From the NCBI GenBank assembly GCA_038496445.1, contig JALMLS010000566.1, forward strand, positions 1 to 40,537: 40,537 nucleotides of DNA. Reading direction: 5' to 3'. Source of the stretch: Trichosphaerium sp. ATCC 40318 (lineage: Eukaryota > Protista > Tubulinea). The position numbers and the translations under genes were made by a program. Positions 11,903-31,911 of this stretch are shown here, piece after piece. How positions within the stretch are numbered: position 1 is the stretch's first letter; the number at the start of each line of letters is the position of its first letter. Below the pieces are notes generated by a model. It was given only the letters and a program-made list of their open reading frames with translations, was not told where the DNA came from and made no database searches.

Positions 11903-14840
11903 TTAAAAATACTGTAATGGAGAGTCATGACTTATGTCTGTGTTTTGTATTTCTATTTCATCTCCGAAAAGGATATTATCTTTATACTCTGGTACTAAGA
12001 ATGAATCTATGATTTCTTCTTGTTTTTCATCAAAAAACGAGCTAAATTCTGGTTGACATCTCTCTACTGTCAAGTCTATCTTTGGTTCGTTGCTACAAAT
12101 TAAATTAATGTCTGGTACTTTTACTTGTACATCAGACGCATTCCGAGGACTAGTGACACTACACCAACATTAGAAAAAACGAGAAACTCCAAAAAAAGAA
12201 AAAAAAAGAGCTAGAATTTGTTATTGCTTCTCTTATTGATGTTTAGAAGTTTGACCGCACGTGATCGAGAATATACGGTTTTTTGGCGCGAGAATATCAA
12301 ACGAAGGGAAAAATCACGTGCAGGGTTAACGTACACTTCAACAATATTTGTTGGTTTGGTTCTTTGTATTTCTTCAATTGTATCTTTAAAATGTGACATA
12401 TCATATCCATACGCGATAGCTTCATCATAGAGAGCTCTACATTGAATATTTACTACAATAGTATAACATAATAATATACTTACTTTGTGAGCATATTAGA
12501 TGTTCTCCAAGTGTTTGCCAAGTCAATCATTGTTCGAAACGTCTTTTTAGAAACAGTCAGAAAAAAGCTCGTGTTTGCGAAATGTTTGCGTTGCATACCT
12601 CTAAAAACAATAACTGGTCATTTGTTCTTATTGCGATAAAGCAACAGTTGTAAGCTGTAAAGTAGCATCCAGGGAAACATGAAATATTTGGACATTGAGT
12701 GTATGAGGACCAAGCTTTTCTAGCTCCCTTAAAAAAAATTATTTAAAGACAGAAAATAATGTGTCATACCTCAAGAGCCATGGTGTGATAAGATCCTGCG
12801 AGATTAACAACAGAGGTAAGAGTCATAATTAGGATAGAAAAGAACGTTACATTCAAAGGGCTCGAAGAACTCATCTCTTGGATGAGAAATTCTTCTGCCT
12901 CTTTCAACTGACACATGAAAGCTGTGTGTTCAATTGCCGACTAACAATGCATGTCAACAAACAACCAAGAGACTATAACAAATGCCTAACCAATTGCAGT
13001 AGGTCAGCCTTTTCTACACCCCATGATGAGCTATACCAAGGAAGCTTGGAAACGCCAAACCAAATCTAAAAAAAGAATTAGAAACACGTGATTTAGTAAC
13101 ATAGAGCCACCGGTCGTAAGATTGATTTTAACGTACACCAGCAAGAGAAGCCCATAACCTCTGTATAATCTCAACTTGTTTTAGAGGCCTAGCATTAGGT
13201 CCATAGCTAAGTTTAGATACTCTTTGTAAAACTCTTTCGTGTATATCAACAATATCTTCACTGGAGAAGGAAAAAATGAGTTCGCTAGCAACTTCTAGGT
13301 ATTTTACCGTGAGCTGTTTAGGATGTCTTTGTGGTGTAAAAGAAAGTTTGTATCTAAACGTTCAATAAGATCAGTGGATTCTTTATCATCAACGCTAGTA
13401 AGAGCATGCTTTAGATGGTTTGTAACGCCTAATGAAAGGAAATAAGAAAACAACTCGGGATTTTTTATATTCCGAACTGCGAAAATCACGAGTGACATGT
13501 AACTATACCGTGAGCTATTTGAAGATAGAACTGACCATCTGCTCCATTTTCAATTGTGTTAACGTATATACCGAGAGTGTAGGCACCAACTAGATAATAT
13601 TAATAAAAGGGTTATGAATTCGTCATGTTCGGAAAAAAAATAACGCACGCGCAACGATTGGGTCTTTGGTGTCAACAAGGTTACGCAGAATCTGTTTGCC
13701 CATATCAATAAATTTATCTGCATGATTTATATAACCTGTAAGCCTTGCTCCCCAAGCCATACAAGCCAAATTCTCAAGCATTGAAGGATCATGAAGCCAC
13801 TCTGAAATTTCGGTTACTTGTTTACGATTTTTTGGGTTTTTTTACAAAAACAAGTTTAAAGTGTGTACAACTCCCAAGGGATTTCTCGGCACAAAGGAGA
13901 GTCGGTAGCGTAGGATGATTGTTGGTTTAATTACTGAGAATCGTAAAAAGTTCTAGCGCATTTTTTGATGCACATTAAAAAGGTGCTTACTGTTATCTTC
14001 ATGCAAAGCATCGAGAATTGTCCTTGTATCAAACACAGGTACAGGTGAAGCCTTAAAACAAGGTCAGTATTTTCATCCTGTTTATGAATTATCTACTAAA
14101 AAAGTAATTCGTCAAGCGAAATGTATTCACAAAGTAACGTTTTATATGTACCAAAGCACGTGATATTTCGTTTTTGGTATACTTTAATAAAAAATCCGAA
14201 AAAAAATCGTAAACGTTTGATTCACGCACATGCCATGGGTCCATGATATTTCTGTATAAGTCCATGTACCCATTAATATTAGATACAAGTCCTATACGTG
14301 CTTGTAAAACCCAATCTTTTACCTACAACTAGCGCATCAAAAATTCTGTGAGAAAAAACAAAAAATAAAAGGCTTCGCTTTCTACATTGAGCAATTAACT
14401 TTTTTACGCACAGGAGAAGCTGTAGCTTTATCATATAGTGTCTTTAATCTTACTACTTCTCTTTTTTGTTCTTCCAATTGTAATCTTACAGTTTCCAACT
14501 CTTCCAACATTGTAACTCTATGTCCTATCCAGAACAAAGTCACTCAAGTGAAAAAAGAAAATAAATTAAACAAAAAAAAAAAACCGTTTGTTACTTCCTG
14601 TTAGCGCCTTTATATAAAACCACGCTAGATAAATACAAGTGCCATTTTCGCAGATGTTACAACATTACCTTGCACTGGACCTCGTTTTCTTGGTCTAGCA
14701 TAGCTGCATTTCACTTTAAGTTCAATACAACGCTCACAGGGACGCTGTCCGTTACACTTCTTGTGTCTTGCCCTGCATAGCTTACAAGCGCGTTTACTTG
14801 GTGCTTCTTTTGATGTACGCTTTCTCTTACGCGTACTCAT
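11903..14840 (-). CDS. Zn(II)2Cys6 (Gal4-type) transcription factor, multi-exon
   Basis: MSTRKRKR (NLS-like), then RACKLCRARHKKCNGQRPCERCIELKVKCSY (C-x2-C-x6-C-x5-C-x2-C-x6-C) and RKRGP, spliced to a coiled coil (MLEELETVRLQLEEQKREV). Helical middle exons and an acidic C-terminus ending ...SPLQYF* at 11903-11905. Linking the downstream exons to this gene is inferred from compatible splice phases. Confidence 0.8.
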
Positions 14841-15169
14841 TGTTGTTACGCCGAAATTATTATTATTACAAGCACGTGGAATCAAAAAAGCGAAAACTTA
14901 ATGACACGTGACTTGAAAAGGTCTTTATTAGGATGGTATCTCTATGGAATCTTTAAAAAAGCTAATAAACATATCTGGGATAAAAAAACCAAAACGAAAC
15001 ACGTGTTTTATTGACAGTTGTCACCGTTATACGTCACTTTTTATCAAGGTATTTGTGATTCTTTTGTACTGGCTGGCGTTTGATACTATTAAAAAACAAA
15101 GCTGGTATTCTATTTTAGGGTGAAAAAACAGAATCGAAATACAAATAGTGGAGGAACACATAGTGTTTT

Positions 15170-16325: not shown

Positions 16326-18199
16326 TTATGATGAACAAAAAGGCTCAATGGGTGGAATGTACATCTCGTGGGTTAGTTTAATGTAAGTAACTATTTTCTC
16401 ATTTTGCGCTAGAAGATGGATAGGAATACTATTTGGAAAAGTACAGTCACAAAACGTGGCAACATCACAGCGAAGTGAAGTGACTGAATAATCAACACAA
16501 AACTCACTGCTGACGTTAATACAAGAGTCAAGAGACAAGTTCTATAAGAGTAACGGAATCACGTGTAGCGGCAAATCTTACAACCCCATTTACAGACAAA
16601 GTAGGCTGCTTTGTATCAAGCAAGCGAGTTGGAAAATTCAGGCCGTTGATAAGCTTCTCATTTAGTGTCAACGTGCTAACTTCTATCGTATCTACCACTA
16701 TTGGTATACCTTTCCATATTTAAACCACAATACTCCATGGTTTCTATGGACCGGCACGGTAAAAAGTTGACTTGGTTTAATACAATTATTGTTTTTTTAT
16801 TTCTGTTATACAACTTTTTGGCATGTGTACATTGCGAGTTGACATGTATCATTTAATACACGTGCACTTCTGTGTGTTACTTTGTATGTACGAGGTGGTA
16901 ATCCAAGAAGCGTTTCAATGGGAGAATCTAACATAGACTGTCAGTATAAAAAAAACTGAAAAAATATTCGTACCTCTCTTTTCTTTTGTGTTAATAAGAA
17001 GTGTTGCGATAAAAGATGATGGTTTATACATATCCAGTATACGTTCAACAAGTACATCATATTGTTCTTGTGCTGCGTTCGTCTCAAAACTAACAAACGA
17101 GAATTCTTTTTGTGGAGTAACATGAGTGGTGAAGAAATTCTAAAGCAAAAAAAACAACGTCAGTTTACACCAAGAAAAAAAAAAGCATGTGATCCAAAAC
17201 AACCAAATAAAATACAATAATCCTTCTACATTACCACAACAGAAAATAAAATGCCAAGAAATTGCATACAAGTCAAAAAACAATTAAAAAAAAAAGAAAA
17301 AAATGAGAAAAAAAAAGGTACCTTTTGTGACAGTCCATTTACTGAGTAACCACAAGGTTCAAAAAGGAATTCGCTTGTTGTAGCAGGTTCATTTGATATT
17401 ATAGTAGACATTCCAGTACTTTTTGTTATTCCTTTTGCTGTTCTACCTTCCTTGGCGTAAAAACTTTGAGAGACTTTTTCGTCGATCTGAGTCATCATTA
17501 TCTCAAAATGTTGATACTTCCCAAGCGCAGGTATATGATTTTCAGATGGTCTAGCGAGGTACAAGTACCAGTTATCAGTCGATGATGGATTTCCGAGCGT
17601 ATAACCCGTTCCTGCAAAGTGTTTGTTCAAGTATTCTACCTACAGCGGTTTTAGTACGTTTAGGAGCGTTTGGACGGTTTTTGCGTTGTTGGTGAACTTA
17701 GAGAGATCGGTTTTAATAAAACAAGCTGTTTCGTACCTCTTCGTCAAAGTTACGGTGCGGAAAGTGCTGTTTTGAAGGTTCCATGTAGCTTTTACGTGAG
17801 TAAGCCACAAATGACACAGAAGTCTTTGCGCGTTGCGAAAATTCCATGAGAGTATCAAGGCATCGTAGTAGTCTCGTCTCGCCGCATGTTTTGAGTACAA
17901 CTTTGTTGGAAAATACAAATAAGCTCGATTCTGATAGTACATACGCGTCACAATGATCGTTGGATGTTTGTGATAGAATATCGCATCGAATATGGCGTAG
18001 TAGAGTCAACCAGTCATTTTTCTTAATTACTCTCATCCCCATTGTATTATCTGTAGAACATGAAAACTCTACGTCTAGGCGCTTTTCCGCTCCTTCAAAA
18101 AAATCTGTAGGCCTTTGGGAAAATAAGCGAAACGAAACACTGAATGTCATCGTGAATTAGCCCCTAATAATGGTATACGTACACCTCAATATTCATCAT
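16326..18199 (-). CDS. AMD1: S-adenosylmethionine decarboxylase proenzyme (eukaryotic type); 3' exons uncertain
   Basis: MMNIEV|PTDFFEGAEKRL, DAYVLSESSLFV (autocleavage/pyruvoyl site), LKTCGETRLL, QHFPHRNFDEE|VEYL, FEPCGYSVNG and THVTPQKEFSFVSFETN. The C-terminus ends either near 16807 or, with three further exons, at 16326. Confidence 0.95.
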
Positions 18200-25840: not shown

Positions 25841-26274
25841 GACACCTCTACGCGAGAGATTAAGGTAAAATATTTTTGCATTTTTATAAAAAAGGCTAAC
25901 ATCCATGCCCATTTGGATGCATATTTTTTGCATTTTCGCCACTGCTAGAAACAGCACAGTAGCACTATAAAAGAACAGCGGAGATGATTCCGGAAGCTTT
26001 TAATTAATAACAGTGAGTTTGGCTTATTCAGCGTATAGAGATATATATATATATAACTTGAACTTAGATTAATAAAGCAAACTTAACTTATAACTCGTAA
26101 TGAAGCTACTAAAGCTTTGAATGTTACTTCAAGTACAATGCAGCGAAAATTGTAACAATTCATCGAATTGTAAAAAACTTGTGTTTTTGACATAATTTTA
26201 TGTGCTGCAGTTTATTTTTGGCTTATTGCGTGTTAAGTTGTATCTAGAACTGTCTACTTGTTACAACGCCATTA

Positions 26275-28960
26275 ATGGCTCTTCGTTTAAACGCTGATGG
26301 CGTCCATGACAAAGACGATCTACTCTCTCTGTTAACGCGTAAATTTCATCCAAAGATAACTAAATACCTACTGGCAGTCTTTTTACAAGGAAGTAGGCAT
26401 GTGGAACCATAAAATCTATAAAACTGGCTAATAATATCCGTAGAGTACACGGAACGCATAGAGATGATTCTGACTGGGACTACATAGCAATAACTACTCA
26501 TCAAATAAAAAACGCTTACGATGAAGCGGCAGATAATATGCTTGAGTATAAAGGCTCTGAGCAAGATATAGACGTTATATTTTATACAGAGGAAGAGTTA
26601 GAGTCGTATGTACGTTAATAGATAATTCAACAAAAACTTGTCTTTTTTGTGTTTTTTTTGTTTTGATTGCTTTCTGTCGCTTGTTGATCAATTATTTATA
26701 AAAGATAGTTGTTAGAGCACCGCATGGCATTACTAGAGATGATCCACTATCCAAAAAAATACGTAAGAAGCAACTATCAGACTGTAGCAGTTGAAAACAG
26801 TTTTTGGGTTTTTCGCGCACTAATTTCATGTTTAGATTGTGTACAAAAAACGTGATTTGCCTTGCGAGAATTACTTAGATATAGACGTTCTAAAAAGGTA
26901 TGACGTTTGTATTGTTACCACGGATACCTAAAATTAACTAGCACTACAATTTGGTCAGCAAATCAACGATTTAATTTGGCACGAGAACGGATTAGAGAAG
27001 GAAAGATTTTCAAAGCTCAAAAAGTACTTTCCTTCCTTCCATTCTTTCATTATCTTATGTTATGATAATTATAGCTTGTCCTTATCGCAATAAGATATTT
27101 GGAGTTTGCTACACAACTAGTGGAAAAGGTTCGTTTCCTGCACATCCAGAAAAACTTAAACATTTGGCTTGTGTTACGGATTCTCATATTTTTCTTAGGG
27201 CACTATTTACAACGTTAACCTCAAACCTTATTGGAACAGTACGTATTTATTTTATACTATGGTTTTAATATACTGACGCCAGTATCTTTTATAGAAATTC
27301 AAGAGATTGACGCACAAACATGGCCAGAATTTCAGAAGTTTTACAAACCTCTTTGGCAAGAATCGTTAACAAAGTTTAAGAAGTCTGGAAGTTTCAATAC
27401 TTTCTATATCCATGATGAACTTGACTTCAATGCTTGGTCAATGGCTCGCGTTAGGTTAGGTAATTTGACATCCAAGGACATTGATGGTAGCAATCACGAA
27501 GACATAATTCTTCAGTGTCTTAAAAATAACAGTTTGTCTGTACAAAAAAAGTATAAACTTACTGTAGCAAGTCATAACGATTTTGAACCTTTGATACAGC
27601 TTTCTGCGAATGCTTATACACCTAACAGGTAACCAATATTATGAATCGTATAACTATAAATATTTGGCTAGTACTTATAACCTCATAGTGCTGCACTTGC
27701 TTCATCTCAAGGTCTTCTTGTTTTGGATGTTGATGCTTTCGAGCAAAATGTCAAATGTTATTCTGGTAGCTATGTTAAAGGTACAGGTGATATCGATTGG
27801 AATGTACCAAGTGTTGTTACACCGATATATGATGGGCATGTTTGTTCCTTGTATCACTATAAAGGTGAATGGCGTGTTGCTTCAGAACGTAAGTGAAAAC
27901 GGCTAATAAGTTGCTTAAGTGTTGTGTATAGGACTTCCTGATGCTTCAGAGGGTGTATGTACACGGCCTTTTGATGGTAAGGTAGTCAAGACTACATTTG
28001 CTGAATTATTTTGGCGTATTTGGAAGGAGAACGAGTTCACTCTTCCAACTGAAACAAACTTGTACGCTTTCTTAACTTTTTCTTACATTATAACTCATGT
28101 TGCTTCTTTAGGTGCTATAGCCTAGTGTTGATGTCACAATCGTTTAGAAAGGTTGGTAGGTGTAACCGAGATACTATAATTCACATGAAAACTTTTAATG
28201 TTGACACATTACAAAGTGTTGAAGAAGAGGTTCGTAGTTTCTTTCGTTCATATGTGTTAACTATTTGTTAGTTTTGCTGTGGAGAGCCTCCTAAAGAAGC
28301 TTGCCATATTTACAATGATGAAACTTTAGAACAAGCCGTAGATGAATTGAATCCTTTTGGACCAATTGTGAGTGCATTTAGATGAGGAGTTAGTTTCTTG
28401 TATTTTTCTCGTTTTAGTTCAAACTTTAACGCCTGTTTGTCTATTAGGCTGGCTATGCTATTACACAACATAAAACTGTTTTTAAGAGATATAACAAAGG
28501 ATATGTTGCTATAAAATACTCTATTGGTTTTGTTTGTGATACACCATTCAACGTCTCTGCTAAAAAATTCTGCTTGGATTCTTTACTTAATATCATACGA
28601 CTTAATCAAGTTGAAGAGTGCTTGCATCATCTCCCACACCTTGAAACAGATATGAAATCTGCAGAAGAGAAGTATGAGAATATTATAATGTACCTAGAGA
28701 ATGAATGGGCGAAGGTTAAGGATGCAAAAGACATGAGAACATATTTTTCTCTTATCAAGAAAAAAAAACTGGTACGTCCTTTTTGTAGCAAGTTATTTTA
28801 GTAGCATACACGTGTTAATATATATTTTTAGGAGCCAAAAGTAAAGCCAATACTATTGTGTTTATTCAAGAATGCTGAGTTACAAACTATTCGTGATGCT
28901 TTGGCTAGAGTGAATAGAAAGACATTTAAAACAATTGTAAAACTATGTATTACCAATTAA
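26275..28960 (+). CDS. Pol-beta-superfamily nucleotidyltransferase fused to a degenerate T4 Rnl1-like RNA ligase domain, multi-exon
   Basis: N-terminal VFLQGSRVHGTHRDDSDWDYIAI...DIDVIFY (GS, DxD and third Asp; needs GC-AG intron 26397-26443). C-terminal SSQGLLVLD...IDWN...TPIYDGHVCSLYHYKGEWRVASERLPDAS...TFAELFWRIW...LNP..AGYAI...YVAIK...LLNIIRLN follows the Rnl1-like layout. Stop TAA at 28958-28960. Confidence 0.75.
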
Positions 28961-30612: not shown

Positions 30613-31911
30613 ATGGAGTGTATACAAAGGATTAAAGACCAACGCAGTGTAAAATCGGATGACTGCCATCTATTGAGCCTCCCAGTTGAGATTCAGCTTG
30701 ATATTATCGATTTGGACCTATCCCGGGAAATAAATTGTATTTGGCCATTACTATCTAAACAGACGGCAATGACGCTCAGGTTTGATGGGGAGATGAAAAA
30801 GCATGGAAAATGGCAAAGAAGAATAAATAACAGGCTTTTTTGTGAGGTGTATTGGAACCATGGTGTTCAACATGAGTACAAGAAATGGGATAAGAATGGC
30901 CAAATGAAACGGCATTTTAGTTTTCTCAATGGGAAAAAACATGGAGAGTGCAAGCGTTGGTATTACAATGGTCAGTTATATGATCACCGCAATTATGTAA
31001 ATGGTATACAAATTGGGGAATATAGAGCTTGGCATGACAATGGCCAATTAAATGAGCAGTGCCATTATGTTGATGGTAAGCGAGATGGAAAGTACATCAT
31101 GTGGTTTAAAAATGGCCAATTGAAGCAACGTGATAATTATGTTAATGGGAAACGACATGGTGAGTGCAAGCATTGGTACAGCAATGGCGAATTAAGGCAA
31201 CATGATAATTACGTTAATGGGAAACAACATGGTGAGTGCAAGTATTGGTACAGCGATGGTCAAGTAAAGAAAGAATATTACATAAATGGGAAACAACATG
31301 GTGAGTGCAAACGTTGGTACAGCAATGGTCAATTACAATACCAATATTGTTACAATAGTGGTGTCAAAGATGGAGAGTTTATGGAGTGGCTTGAATCTGG
31401 CCAATTGCTTTTAAAGTGCACTTACACAAACGGTACACTACATGGAGAGCACAAAACCTGGCATAATAATGGCCAAGTGAGGAATGAGTTTAATTATATC
31501 AATGGCCAAAACGAAGGAGAGTTCAAGAGGTGGTACAGCAATGGTCAATTATGTGAACAGTGCAAATATGTCAAAAATAAAAAAGAAGGAGAGTTCAATG
31601 AGTGGTATTACAATGGCCAATTGAAGAAGTGTGTTCAGTATGTCAATGGCATACAACACGGGATGTACAACACATGGTACAAAAACGGCCAAGTTGAGGA
31701 GCAGTTCAATAGTATCAATGGTAAAAAAGAAGGAGAGTACAAGATATGGCATAGCAATGGCAAGTTGTGTGAACAGTGCAATTACATCAACGATAAACGA
31801 GATGGAATACACAAAAACTGGGATAAGAATGGGAAATTGTGTCTGCAGGGCAAATTTGTTTTGGGTAAACAGGAAGGGGAGTACAAGAGGGGACGTAAGG
31901 AAATACATTAG
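30613..31911 (+). CDS. Intronless F-box-like + about 14 MORN-variant repeats protein
   Basis: LLSLPVEIQLDIID followed by 24-aa repeats of the form NGKKHGECKRWYxNGQLxxxxxY. Clear paralogue of 10194-10778 (shared REI...PLL.K..A.T.RF...K.G.W). Confidence 0.9.
   Translation: MECIQRIKDQRSVKSDDCHLLSLPVEIQLDIIDLDLSREINCIWPLLSKQTAMTLRFDGEMKKHGKWQRRINNRLFCEVYWNHGVQHEYKKWDKNGQMKRHFSFLNGKKHGECKRWYYNGQLYDHRNYVNGIQIGEYRAWHDNGQLNEQCHYVDGKRDGKYIMWFKNGQLKQRDNYVNGKRHGECKHWYSNGELRQHDNYVNGKQHGECKYWYSDGQVKKEYYINGKQHGECKRWYSNGQLQYQYCYNSGVKDGEFMEWLESGQLLLKCTYTNGTLHGEHKTWHNNGQVRNEFNYINGQNEGEFKRWYSNGQLCEQCKYVKNKKEGEFNEWYYNGQLKKCVQYVNGIQHGMYNTWYKNGQVEEQFNSINGKKEGEYKIWHSNGKLCEQCNYINDKRDGIHKNWDKNGKLCLQGKFVLGKQEGEYKRGRKEIH

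Follow-up and report, generated by a model that had tools for sequence, protein, structure and literature searches.

The stretch of DNA analysed here, referred to as the window, is the forward strand of contig JALMLS010000566.1 (positions 1–40,537; 40,537 nucleotides) in assembly GCA_038496445.1 of Trichosphaerium sp. ATCC 40318. A first-pass annotation, made by a model that saw only the letters and a list of open reading frames (ORFs), had proposed that one region of it encodes a nucleotidyltransferase (NTase) fused to a catalytically dead RNA ligase of the Rnl1 type. By its sequence, this region holds a single, intact nuclear gene from an amoeba-like protist, predicted to encode a two-domain protein of about 636 amino acids (aa). 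The N-terminal ~250 aa form a Pol-beta-superfamily NTase, with catalytic residues that are intact under the favoured splice. The C-terminal ~390 aa form an Rnl1-family domain, in which an N-subdomain, an adenylyltransferase core and the Rnl1-type helical C-terminal domain (C-domain) can be recognised. The NTase is joined to this domain in one reading frame, and the ligase is, to judge from its residues, inactive. The features of the gene are listed in Table 1.

Table 1. Exons, ambiguous intron and sequence motifs of the NTase–ligase gene (positions are those of the window)
Feature	Position	Strand	Description
Whole coding region	26275–28960	+	14 exons, 13 introns; built by hand from stop-free stretches and splice signals
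Exon 1	26275–26396	+	N-terminal helix; G-S of the Pol-beta motif at 26389–26394
Intron 1, favoured GC-AG form (GCATGT...TAG)	26397–26443	+	
Intron 1, GT-AG alternative, GAG end	26393–26445	+	Deletes the Ser
Exon 2, Pol-beta nucleotidyltransferase core	26444–26609	+	SDWD (two catalytic Asp) at 26469–26480; DID (third Asp) at 26565–26573
Exons 3–7	26709–26762, 26836–26897, 26942–27023, 27075–27128, 27199–27238	+	Helical region after the NTase core; RlaP-like by eye
Exon 8, junction exon	27295–27628	+	First ~70 codons in N-terminal half; last ~40 codons begin the Rnl1 N-subdomain
Exon 9	27689–27888	+	SQGL at 27705–27716, IYDG at 27825–27836, then the W.VAS motif
Exon 10	27932–28061	+	DAS...TF.ELFW.IW...LP block, conserved in this Rnl1 subfamily
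Exon 11, motif III region	28112–28229	+	CYSLVL vs family CY.FEL; E159→V at 28125–28127
Exon 12	28272–28367	+	Ends in the NPF block just before motif IV; alignment partial
Exon 13	28448–28771	+	Motifs IV (AGYAI, 28448–28462) and V, then first helices of the Rnl1-type C-domain
Exon 14	28832–28960	+	End of the C-terminal helical domain and stop; aligns to C-terminal helices of P0001/P0002

The coding region begins with the ATG at 26275 and ends with the stop codon at 28958–28960, and its introns are 42–99 nucleotides (nt) long. Twelve of the introns are unambiguous GT-AG introns, and all 12 have the acceptor TAG. Intron 1 is ambiguous – a GC donor at 26397 gives the sequence GSRVHG across the junction, and a GT donor at 26393 gives QGIHG, with the frame kept. 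The product is 636 aa long with the GC-AG form and 634 aa with the GT-AG alternative. In a scripted check of phases and junction codons, both versions of the model were a multiple of three in length, had consistent phases at the junctions and contained the terminal stop only, which bears out the claim of an open spliced frame. The motifs quoted in the first-pass annotation (IYDG, SQGL, AGYAI, SDWD and DID) were likewise found where it had placed them. The GC-AG form of intron 1 is favoured because its TAG acceptor matches that of the 12 other introns, while the GT-AG alternative needs GAG, and because the spacing GS-x10-DxD then equals that of T4 NrdC.11. The context of the GC donor (GCATGT preceded by AG) is strong. 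A (TA)n microsatellite lies at 26040–26056, ~220 nt 5’ of the ATG; the AT-rich sequence around it presumably forms the promoter region.

Protein-level searches were run exon by exon, and identities and residues were read from the exon rows within alignment columns. Exon 13, compared by phmmer with 1.84 billion representative proteins, had two matches only. One of these (P0001) is a Trinity transcript of the amoeba Rhizamoeba saxonica from EukProt, and the other (P0002) comes from a 1.2-kb JGI contig, L174. P0002 passes the Pfam gathering score for RNA_lig_T4_1 and matches the T4 Rnl1 PHROG over positions 68–366 of 377, C-domain included, with an expectation value (E) of 1.4e-15. When P0001, P0002 and a further relative from a JGI contig, P0004, were compared with the window by tblastn, exons 9, 10 and 13 were matched colinearly at E 1e-6 to 7e-11. 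A hidden Markov model (HMM) made from canonical sequences only – 122 canonical Rnl1 proteins and T4 Rnl1 – was run against 1,473 six-frame segments of the window. Its top three segments were colinear: exon 9, with the motif I region (E 2.5e-4), exon 13 (E 2.5e-3) and exon 10 (E 0.06). Exon 13 covers positions 262–319 of this HMM, within the C-domain, and it aligns, as exon 14 does, to the C-terminal helices of P0001 and P0002. The colinear tblastn matches and the ranking by the canonical-only HMM place the ligase resemblance far beyond chance.

Identity is 28–30% between the window gene and P0001 or P0002, and 35% between those two. Exon 10 is 48% identical to P0002, 43% to P0001 and 54% (z 15.5) to L239, a partial gene from another organism that is described below. 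Upstream of motif I, the tail of exon 8 and the start of exon 9 align to the N-subdomains of P0004, L174 and L239. P0001 was modelled with AlphaFold from an alignment in which each window exon was a row of its own, and the model has a predicted local distance difference test score (pLDDT) of 83. The best three PDB matches to this model are structures of T4 Rnl1 (2c5u, 5tt6 and 9do4, ~330 columns; 331 columns for 2c5u), followed by Rnl3, Rnl5 and Trl1. The assignment of the C-terminal half to the Rnl1 family, and the structural comparison with T4 Rnl1 that had been suggested as a check on it, were thus confirmed, the latter on a relative. The fold had been called ATP-grasp. That name follows one school’s nomenclature; the fold is that of the covalent lysine nucleotidyltransferases, the ligase and capping enzymes.

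The Rnl1-type helical C-domain is the feature that separates Rnl1 from Rnl2–6. RLIG1/C12orf29, Rnl2, Rnl5 and Trl1/Rnl6 were considered as the parent family and were ruled out by the C-domain match and the fold ranking. Several searches gave no result for this half. Scans of single exons against Pfam, NCBIfam and PADLOC returned nothing usable for the ligase exons, with no lone exon reaching Pfam; tblastn of the exons against phage genomes and phmmer of exon 9 and exon 2 against PDB sequences found nothing; and the atlas features for exon 13 were uninformative. Elsewhere in the window, the segment 880–1041 (+) weakly matches the N-terminal helices of the canonical Rnl1 HMM (E 0.11). No other ligase-like segment is near it, and the match is probably due to chance.

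Eight residues of the ligase core (R54, K99, D101, G102, E159, E227, K240 and K242 in T4 numbering) are invariant wherever covered in 188 canonical relatives (122 proteins from databases and 66 ORFs from metagenomes or viruses). The corresponding residues of the window gene are Q, I, D, G, V, A, K and Y, so that five of the eight are lost, and K75 is replaced by G as well. In motif I, KxDG has become IYDG; all 186 of the canonical relatives that cover the position of K99 have Lys there. The CRG(L/I) segment reads SQGL (R54→Q). In motif IV, E227 is replaced by A (28448–28450), and in motif V, K240 is kept (28484–28486) and K242 is replaced by Y (28490–28492). Other residues that are kept are D101, G102/G228 and the aromatic equivalent to F77. 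Among the motif residues, the Lys of motif I serves as AMP acceptor, that of motif V makes contact with the alpha-phosphate, and the Glu of motifs III and IV are ligands of ribose and metal (PMC1807946). In T4 Rnl1, Arg54 and Lys75 are essential contacts of the ATP gamma-phosphate (PMC6379707). With the nucleophilic Lys, Arg54, Lys75, the Glu of both motif III and motif IV and one Lys of motif V all substituted, the sequence predicts that the ligase half carries out neither self-adenylylation nor sealing. The first-pass annotation had described the loss of the adenylated Lys together with substitutions at other conserved positions, and both are borne out by this count.

The dead state is not confined to the window gene. 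P0001, P0002, P0004 and L239 all belong to the same Rnl1 subfamily, as judged by the DAS...FW.(V/I)W...LP block. In P0001 and P0002 the Lys of motif I and the Glu of motif III are retained, but E227 is replaced by Ile and Val, respectively, and K242 is absent. L239 (JGI contig Ga0209935_1046640) is an intron-containing partial gene of eukaryotic type. It reads EYLDG in motif I (K99Y), CYSFKMV in motif III (E159K) and CAGYVLV in motif IV (E227A, as in the window gene), with CRG kept. L239 thus lacks the Lys of motif I and the Glu of motifs III and IV, as the window gene does, and P0001 and P0002 share with both the loss of the motif IV Glu. P0001, P0002 and P0004 differ from the window gene in keeping KxDG and the motif III Glu. 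All four are short or truncated pieces, and an NTase can be shown in none of them. A survey of relatives for KxDG as opposed to dead variants had been recommended, and among these four relatives of eukaryotic type its outcome is one dead copy, L239, and three with KxDG.

From these residues, the motif IV Glu was evidently lost in the common ancestor of a small eukaryotic clade. In two members of the clade the nucleophile is gone as well, replaced by a different residue in each, and the scaffold blocks are still 43–54% identical. The absence of the motif IV Glu from P0001 and P0002, the dead state of L239 and the conservation of the scaffold blocks argue for an inherited dead state, that of a retained pseudoenzyme and not of fresh decay. 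A conserved scaffold and a retained pseudo-ligase had both been proposed from the window sequence, and the agreement with a second organism now supports them.

The alternative to retention is a paralogue in slow decay, in which selection on the ligase half, or on the gene as a whole, has ceased and a stop or frameshift is yet to come. As slow decay would have it, six functionally important residues are gone, and canonical Rnl1 is more distant from the window gene than from P0001 and P0002. Against it, 636 codons in 14 exons are still open and all 13 introns have usable splice sites; the non-catalytic scaffold blocks are conserved in P0001, P0002 and L239; and L239 combines the same E227A with other replacements at K99 and E159, as fits a pseudoenzyme of long standing. 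Slow decay is, by a narrow margin, the likeliest of the alternatives but is itself unlikely.

Further relatives were sought in metagenomes. A first scan found nothing, and a second, based on the FW.(V/I)W block that is conserved in the subfamily, gave 64 loci. Sixty-three of these are uninterrupted ORFs of prokaryotic or viral type, 360–460 aa in length (one of 488 aa), with the residues kept wherever covered; three viral loci are likewise canonical. No NTase was found fused to the ligase in any of the 64, and an adjacent RlaP gene is found only in L210. A profile of the close clade and the window exons found no new member, and a search with a profile started from canonical Rnl1 was dominated by phage ligases.

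Some of the contigs have features of their own. L239 (1–1708) is flanked by CA and CT microsatellites, and one of its introns is largely a (CT)n run. An upstream exon of L239 that by eye resembles the end of the window NTase was rejected as such (z 0.6 against exon 8, with no RlaP signal). In the P0002 contig, L174:1–240 encodes a canonical Rnl1 N-subdomain in another frame, 5’ of the called start of P0002, with the CRG segment missing. The called protein probably results from a frameshift or a skipped exon, and the upstream frame is open to the 5’ end of the contig. In the P0004 contig (L175:790–930), P0004 appears to run into an intron after the motif IIIa region; L175 is probably eukaryotic genomic DNA, and this relative looks active (SRG, EKLDG, FEM). 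L237:40–1503 is an Rnl1-like ORF of 488 aa with a LAGLIDADG_2 domain (Pfam E 9.6e-17) in its first 215 aa, which looks like an insertion or fusion of the intein or homing-endonuclease type.

In the N-terminal half, the Pol-beta core is complete: GS, for which the GC-AG intron is needed, is followed by SDWD and DID. An intact signature beginning with GSRVHG had been claimed. The SDWD and DID parts of it stand, with all three Asp intact in either version of intron 1, and GSRVHG holds only if intron 1 is of the GC-AG form, so that the intact signature is probable but depends on a non-canonical splice. Exon 2 (55 aa) matches phrog_388, the family of T4 NrdC.11, with E 6.9e-4; T4 NrdC.11 is itself a member of Pfam RlaP (PF10127). 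Weaker matches of exon 2 are to NCBIfam MntA (E 0.016) and Pfam Polbeta (E 0.052). The atlas features of exon 2 score 0.92, and all 30 of its nearest named clusters, as neighbours in a language model, carry a Pfam family of Pol-beta NTases (PF18765/PF01909).

The RlaP subtype of this NTase is plausible but unproven from its sequence. Profiles were made from 84 phage and 83 bacterial RlaP sequences. Tests for a colinear chain of matches to RlaP were above all shuffles when exon 2 was included, owing to exon 2 alone. Exons 3 and 6 have their best ungapped placements on the expected RlaP helices; exons of 13–27 aa are too short for exon-wise tests. PF10127 itself went unmatched in the per-exon Pfam scan, and T4 NrdC.11 and bacterial RlaP proteins had no match in the window by tblastn.

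The state of intron 1 also bears on whether the protein is an enzyme at all. If the GT-AG form were the one used, the NTase Ser would be dropped (QGIHG), and the whole protein could be non-catalytic, serving as an RNA-binding scaffold, a decoy or a regulator. The canonical GT donor is usable with the frame kept, and the evidence for the NTase comes from a single short exon with weak E-values. This alternative is nevertheless improbable, given that it requires a GAG acceptor where all 12 other introns have TAG, that the GC donor lies in a strong context and that the three Asp are present in either model.

The join between the halves is within an exon. The domain boundary falls inside exon 8, whose first ~70 codons follow exon 7 in the correct phase. 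Its tail matches the upstream frame of L174 with a Smith-Waterman score of 63, compared with 23.9±4.2 for shuffled sequences (0 of 1000 shuffles reached it), and matches L239 with z 8.3; its score against the N-terminus of P0004 was reached by 4 of 1000 shuffles. The region could be divided into two genes if the NTase gene ended by reading into intron 7 and a ligase-like gene started at the Met within exon 8 (27441). The product from this Met would be about the size of a stand-alone Rnl1 (370–390 aa), and the closest relatives, P0001 and P0002, are known as ligase-only pieces. Two genes are nonetheless decidedly unlikely, because the boundary lies inside exon 8, the phase is correct, and between the exon 8 acceptor and this first in-frame Met there are 48 codons without a stop, a run expected by chance in ~3% of cases in an AT-rich genome. 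In addition, the signals of intron 7 (GTACGT...TAG) are those of introns 2 and 13, with matching phase; only ~160 nt would be left for a terminator and a promoter; and the helical domain of the NTase would be cut short at ~205 aa.

A rewired ligase, with another residue such as the Tyr beside the lost Lys as AMP acceptor or with the fused NTase nucleotidylating it in cis, could draw on the Tyr at or beside the lost nucleophile in both dead copies (IYDG, and EYLDG in L239), on the kept D101, G102, F77-equivalent aromatic and K240, and on the likeness of exon 2 to MntA, an NTase that adenylylates a protein Tyr, but it is very improbable, as the losses extend to both Glu that bind metal and ribose (motifs III and IV) and to R54 and K75, which contact the gamma-phosphate, no such mechanism was found described for this superfamily, and the MntA match is weak and on a fragment.

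The best explanation of the gene as a whole, with roughly an even chance of being correct, is that an active-looking NTase is combined with a dead Rnl1 domain that serves as an RNA-recognising module. The NTase half would most likely be of the RlaP kind, adding one or two nucleotides to the 3’ ends of damaged RNA. The dead ligase domain would keep the surface with which Rnl1 binds RNA ends or broken tRNA loops, and would hold the substrate for the fused NTase. Sealing, if any follows, would be done by another ligase. A Pseudomonas RlaP adds 1–2 nucleoside monophosphates to the 3’ ends of damaged RNA, and RlaP has been proposed to restore nucleotides removed by ribotoxins, before ligation (bioRxiv 10.64898/2025.12.29.696909). 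In T4 Rnl1, specificity for the broken anticodon loop of tRNA comes from the C-domain (PMC6379707). The pseudo-ligase might guide the NTase to RNA ends; RNA binding and tailing activity are conjectural, as is a role in the repair of ribotoxin-cut RNA or in conflict with viruses.

Several points weigh against this explanation. The splicing pattern, the GC-AG intron and the single transcript rest on sequence logic. The searches of protein collections and metagenome contigs found no second NTase–Rnl1 fusion, and the conservation of the fusion itself has no second example; L239 is cut off upstream. The window gene is 16–22% identical to canonical Rnl1 sequences, compared with 23–32% for P0001 and P0002, and this also fits relaxed constraint. 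Against the RlaP HMMs made here, exon 2 has E 0.3–3.6, although it is the best or near-best segment of the window, and the RlaP chain without exon 2 is not significant (p 0.03–0.4; 9–18 of 300 shuffles; z 0.1–1.2).

A broader proposal is offered tentatively, as something possible but doubtful. Amoebae may maintain a lineage of pseudo-RNA-ligases that read the ends of broken RNA or tRNA, having lost their catalytic residues stepwise – first the motif IV Glu, then the nucleophilic Lys and the motif III Glu. In the window gene, such a pseudo-ligase would be fused to an RlaP-like NTase, giving one polypeptide that both recognises and extends the ends, in RNA repair or in defence against ribotoxins and viruses. 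If this is true, no pseudoenzyme of the RNA ligase superfamily with a targeting role has, to our knowledge, been described before. Intermediate stages of the catalytic loss are seen in a small protist lineage. A literature search, the coverage of which did not include Burroughs and Aravind 2016 (where RlaP was named), found no description of an NTase–Rnl1 fusion or of a pseudo-RNA-ligase. Should the dead domain still bind broken tRNA, it would be a natural case of a ligase fold reused for substrate recognition. It would also give a handle on how RlaP-type enzymes find their targets, a question left open by bioRxiv 10.64898/2025.12.29.696909, and would point to an undescribed response to RNA damage in amoebae.

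The neighbourhood of the gene, by eye, looks like ordinary nuclear DNA, with RNA-repair partners absent from the window. The window is AT-rich (~36% GC) and holds ordinary eukaryotic genes with short introns. Neighbouring segments resemble, by eye, a MORN-repeat protein (30613–31908, +), an S-adenosylmethionine decarboxylase (17229–18156, −), a Zn2Cys6 transcription factor (14628–14897, −), a cytochrome P450 (39455–40537, −) and a WD40 protein. A search of the window for a paralogue of the gene found none.

The component families of the window gene are those of the RNA repair cassettes of phages and bacteria, such as Pnkp with Rnl1 or Hen1-RlaP-RlaP-Pnkp. These cassettes are operons of separate, active enzymes, while in the window no kinase/phosphatase partner is nearby. 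Two other proteins, P0003 and P0006, adjoin kinase/phosphatase genes. In plasmid P2 of Deinococcus gobiensis (L093:1364–6330), two adjacent RlaP-like NTase genes lie between Hen1 and Pnkp in an RNA repair operon.

T4 Rnl1 (PF09511 RNA_lig_T4_1 and PF20819 T4_Rnl1_C; PDB 2c5u, 5tt6) has the same three-part layout as the ligase half, and the two also agree in the order and spacing of motifs I, III, IV and V. The window gene differs from it in that the nucleophilic Lys and five more essential residues are replaced, an NTase stands in front, and the gene is a spliced eukaryotic one. The window NTase resembles RlaP in the GS-x10-DxD spacing of T4 NrdC.11, the third Asp and a putative helical extension that is about as long. 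RlaP owes its name to its association with RNA ligases in genomes, and both occur in jumbo phages (PMC7824862). The window NTase is also partnered with an RNA ligase family, the basis on which RlaP was defined. In bacteria and phages, however, RlaP is a separate protein beside an active ligase, and RlaP and Rnl1 are known there as separate, co-operating repair enzymes; in the window the NTase is predicted to be covalently joined to an inactive ligase, so that one eukaryotic protein combines the pair, its sealing part having become a non-catalytic module.

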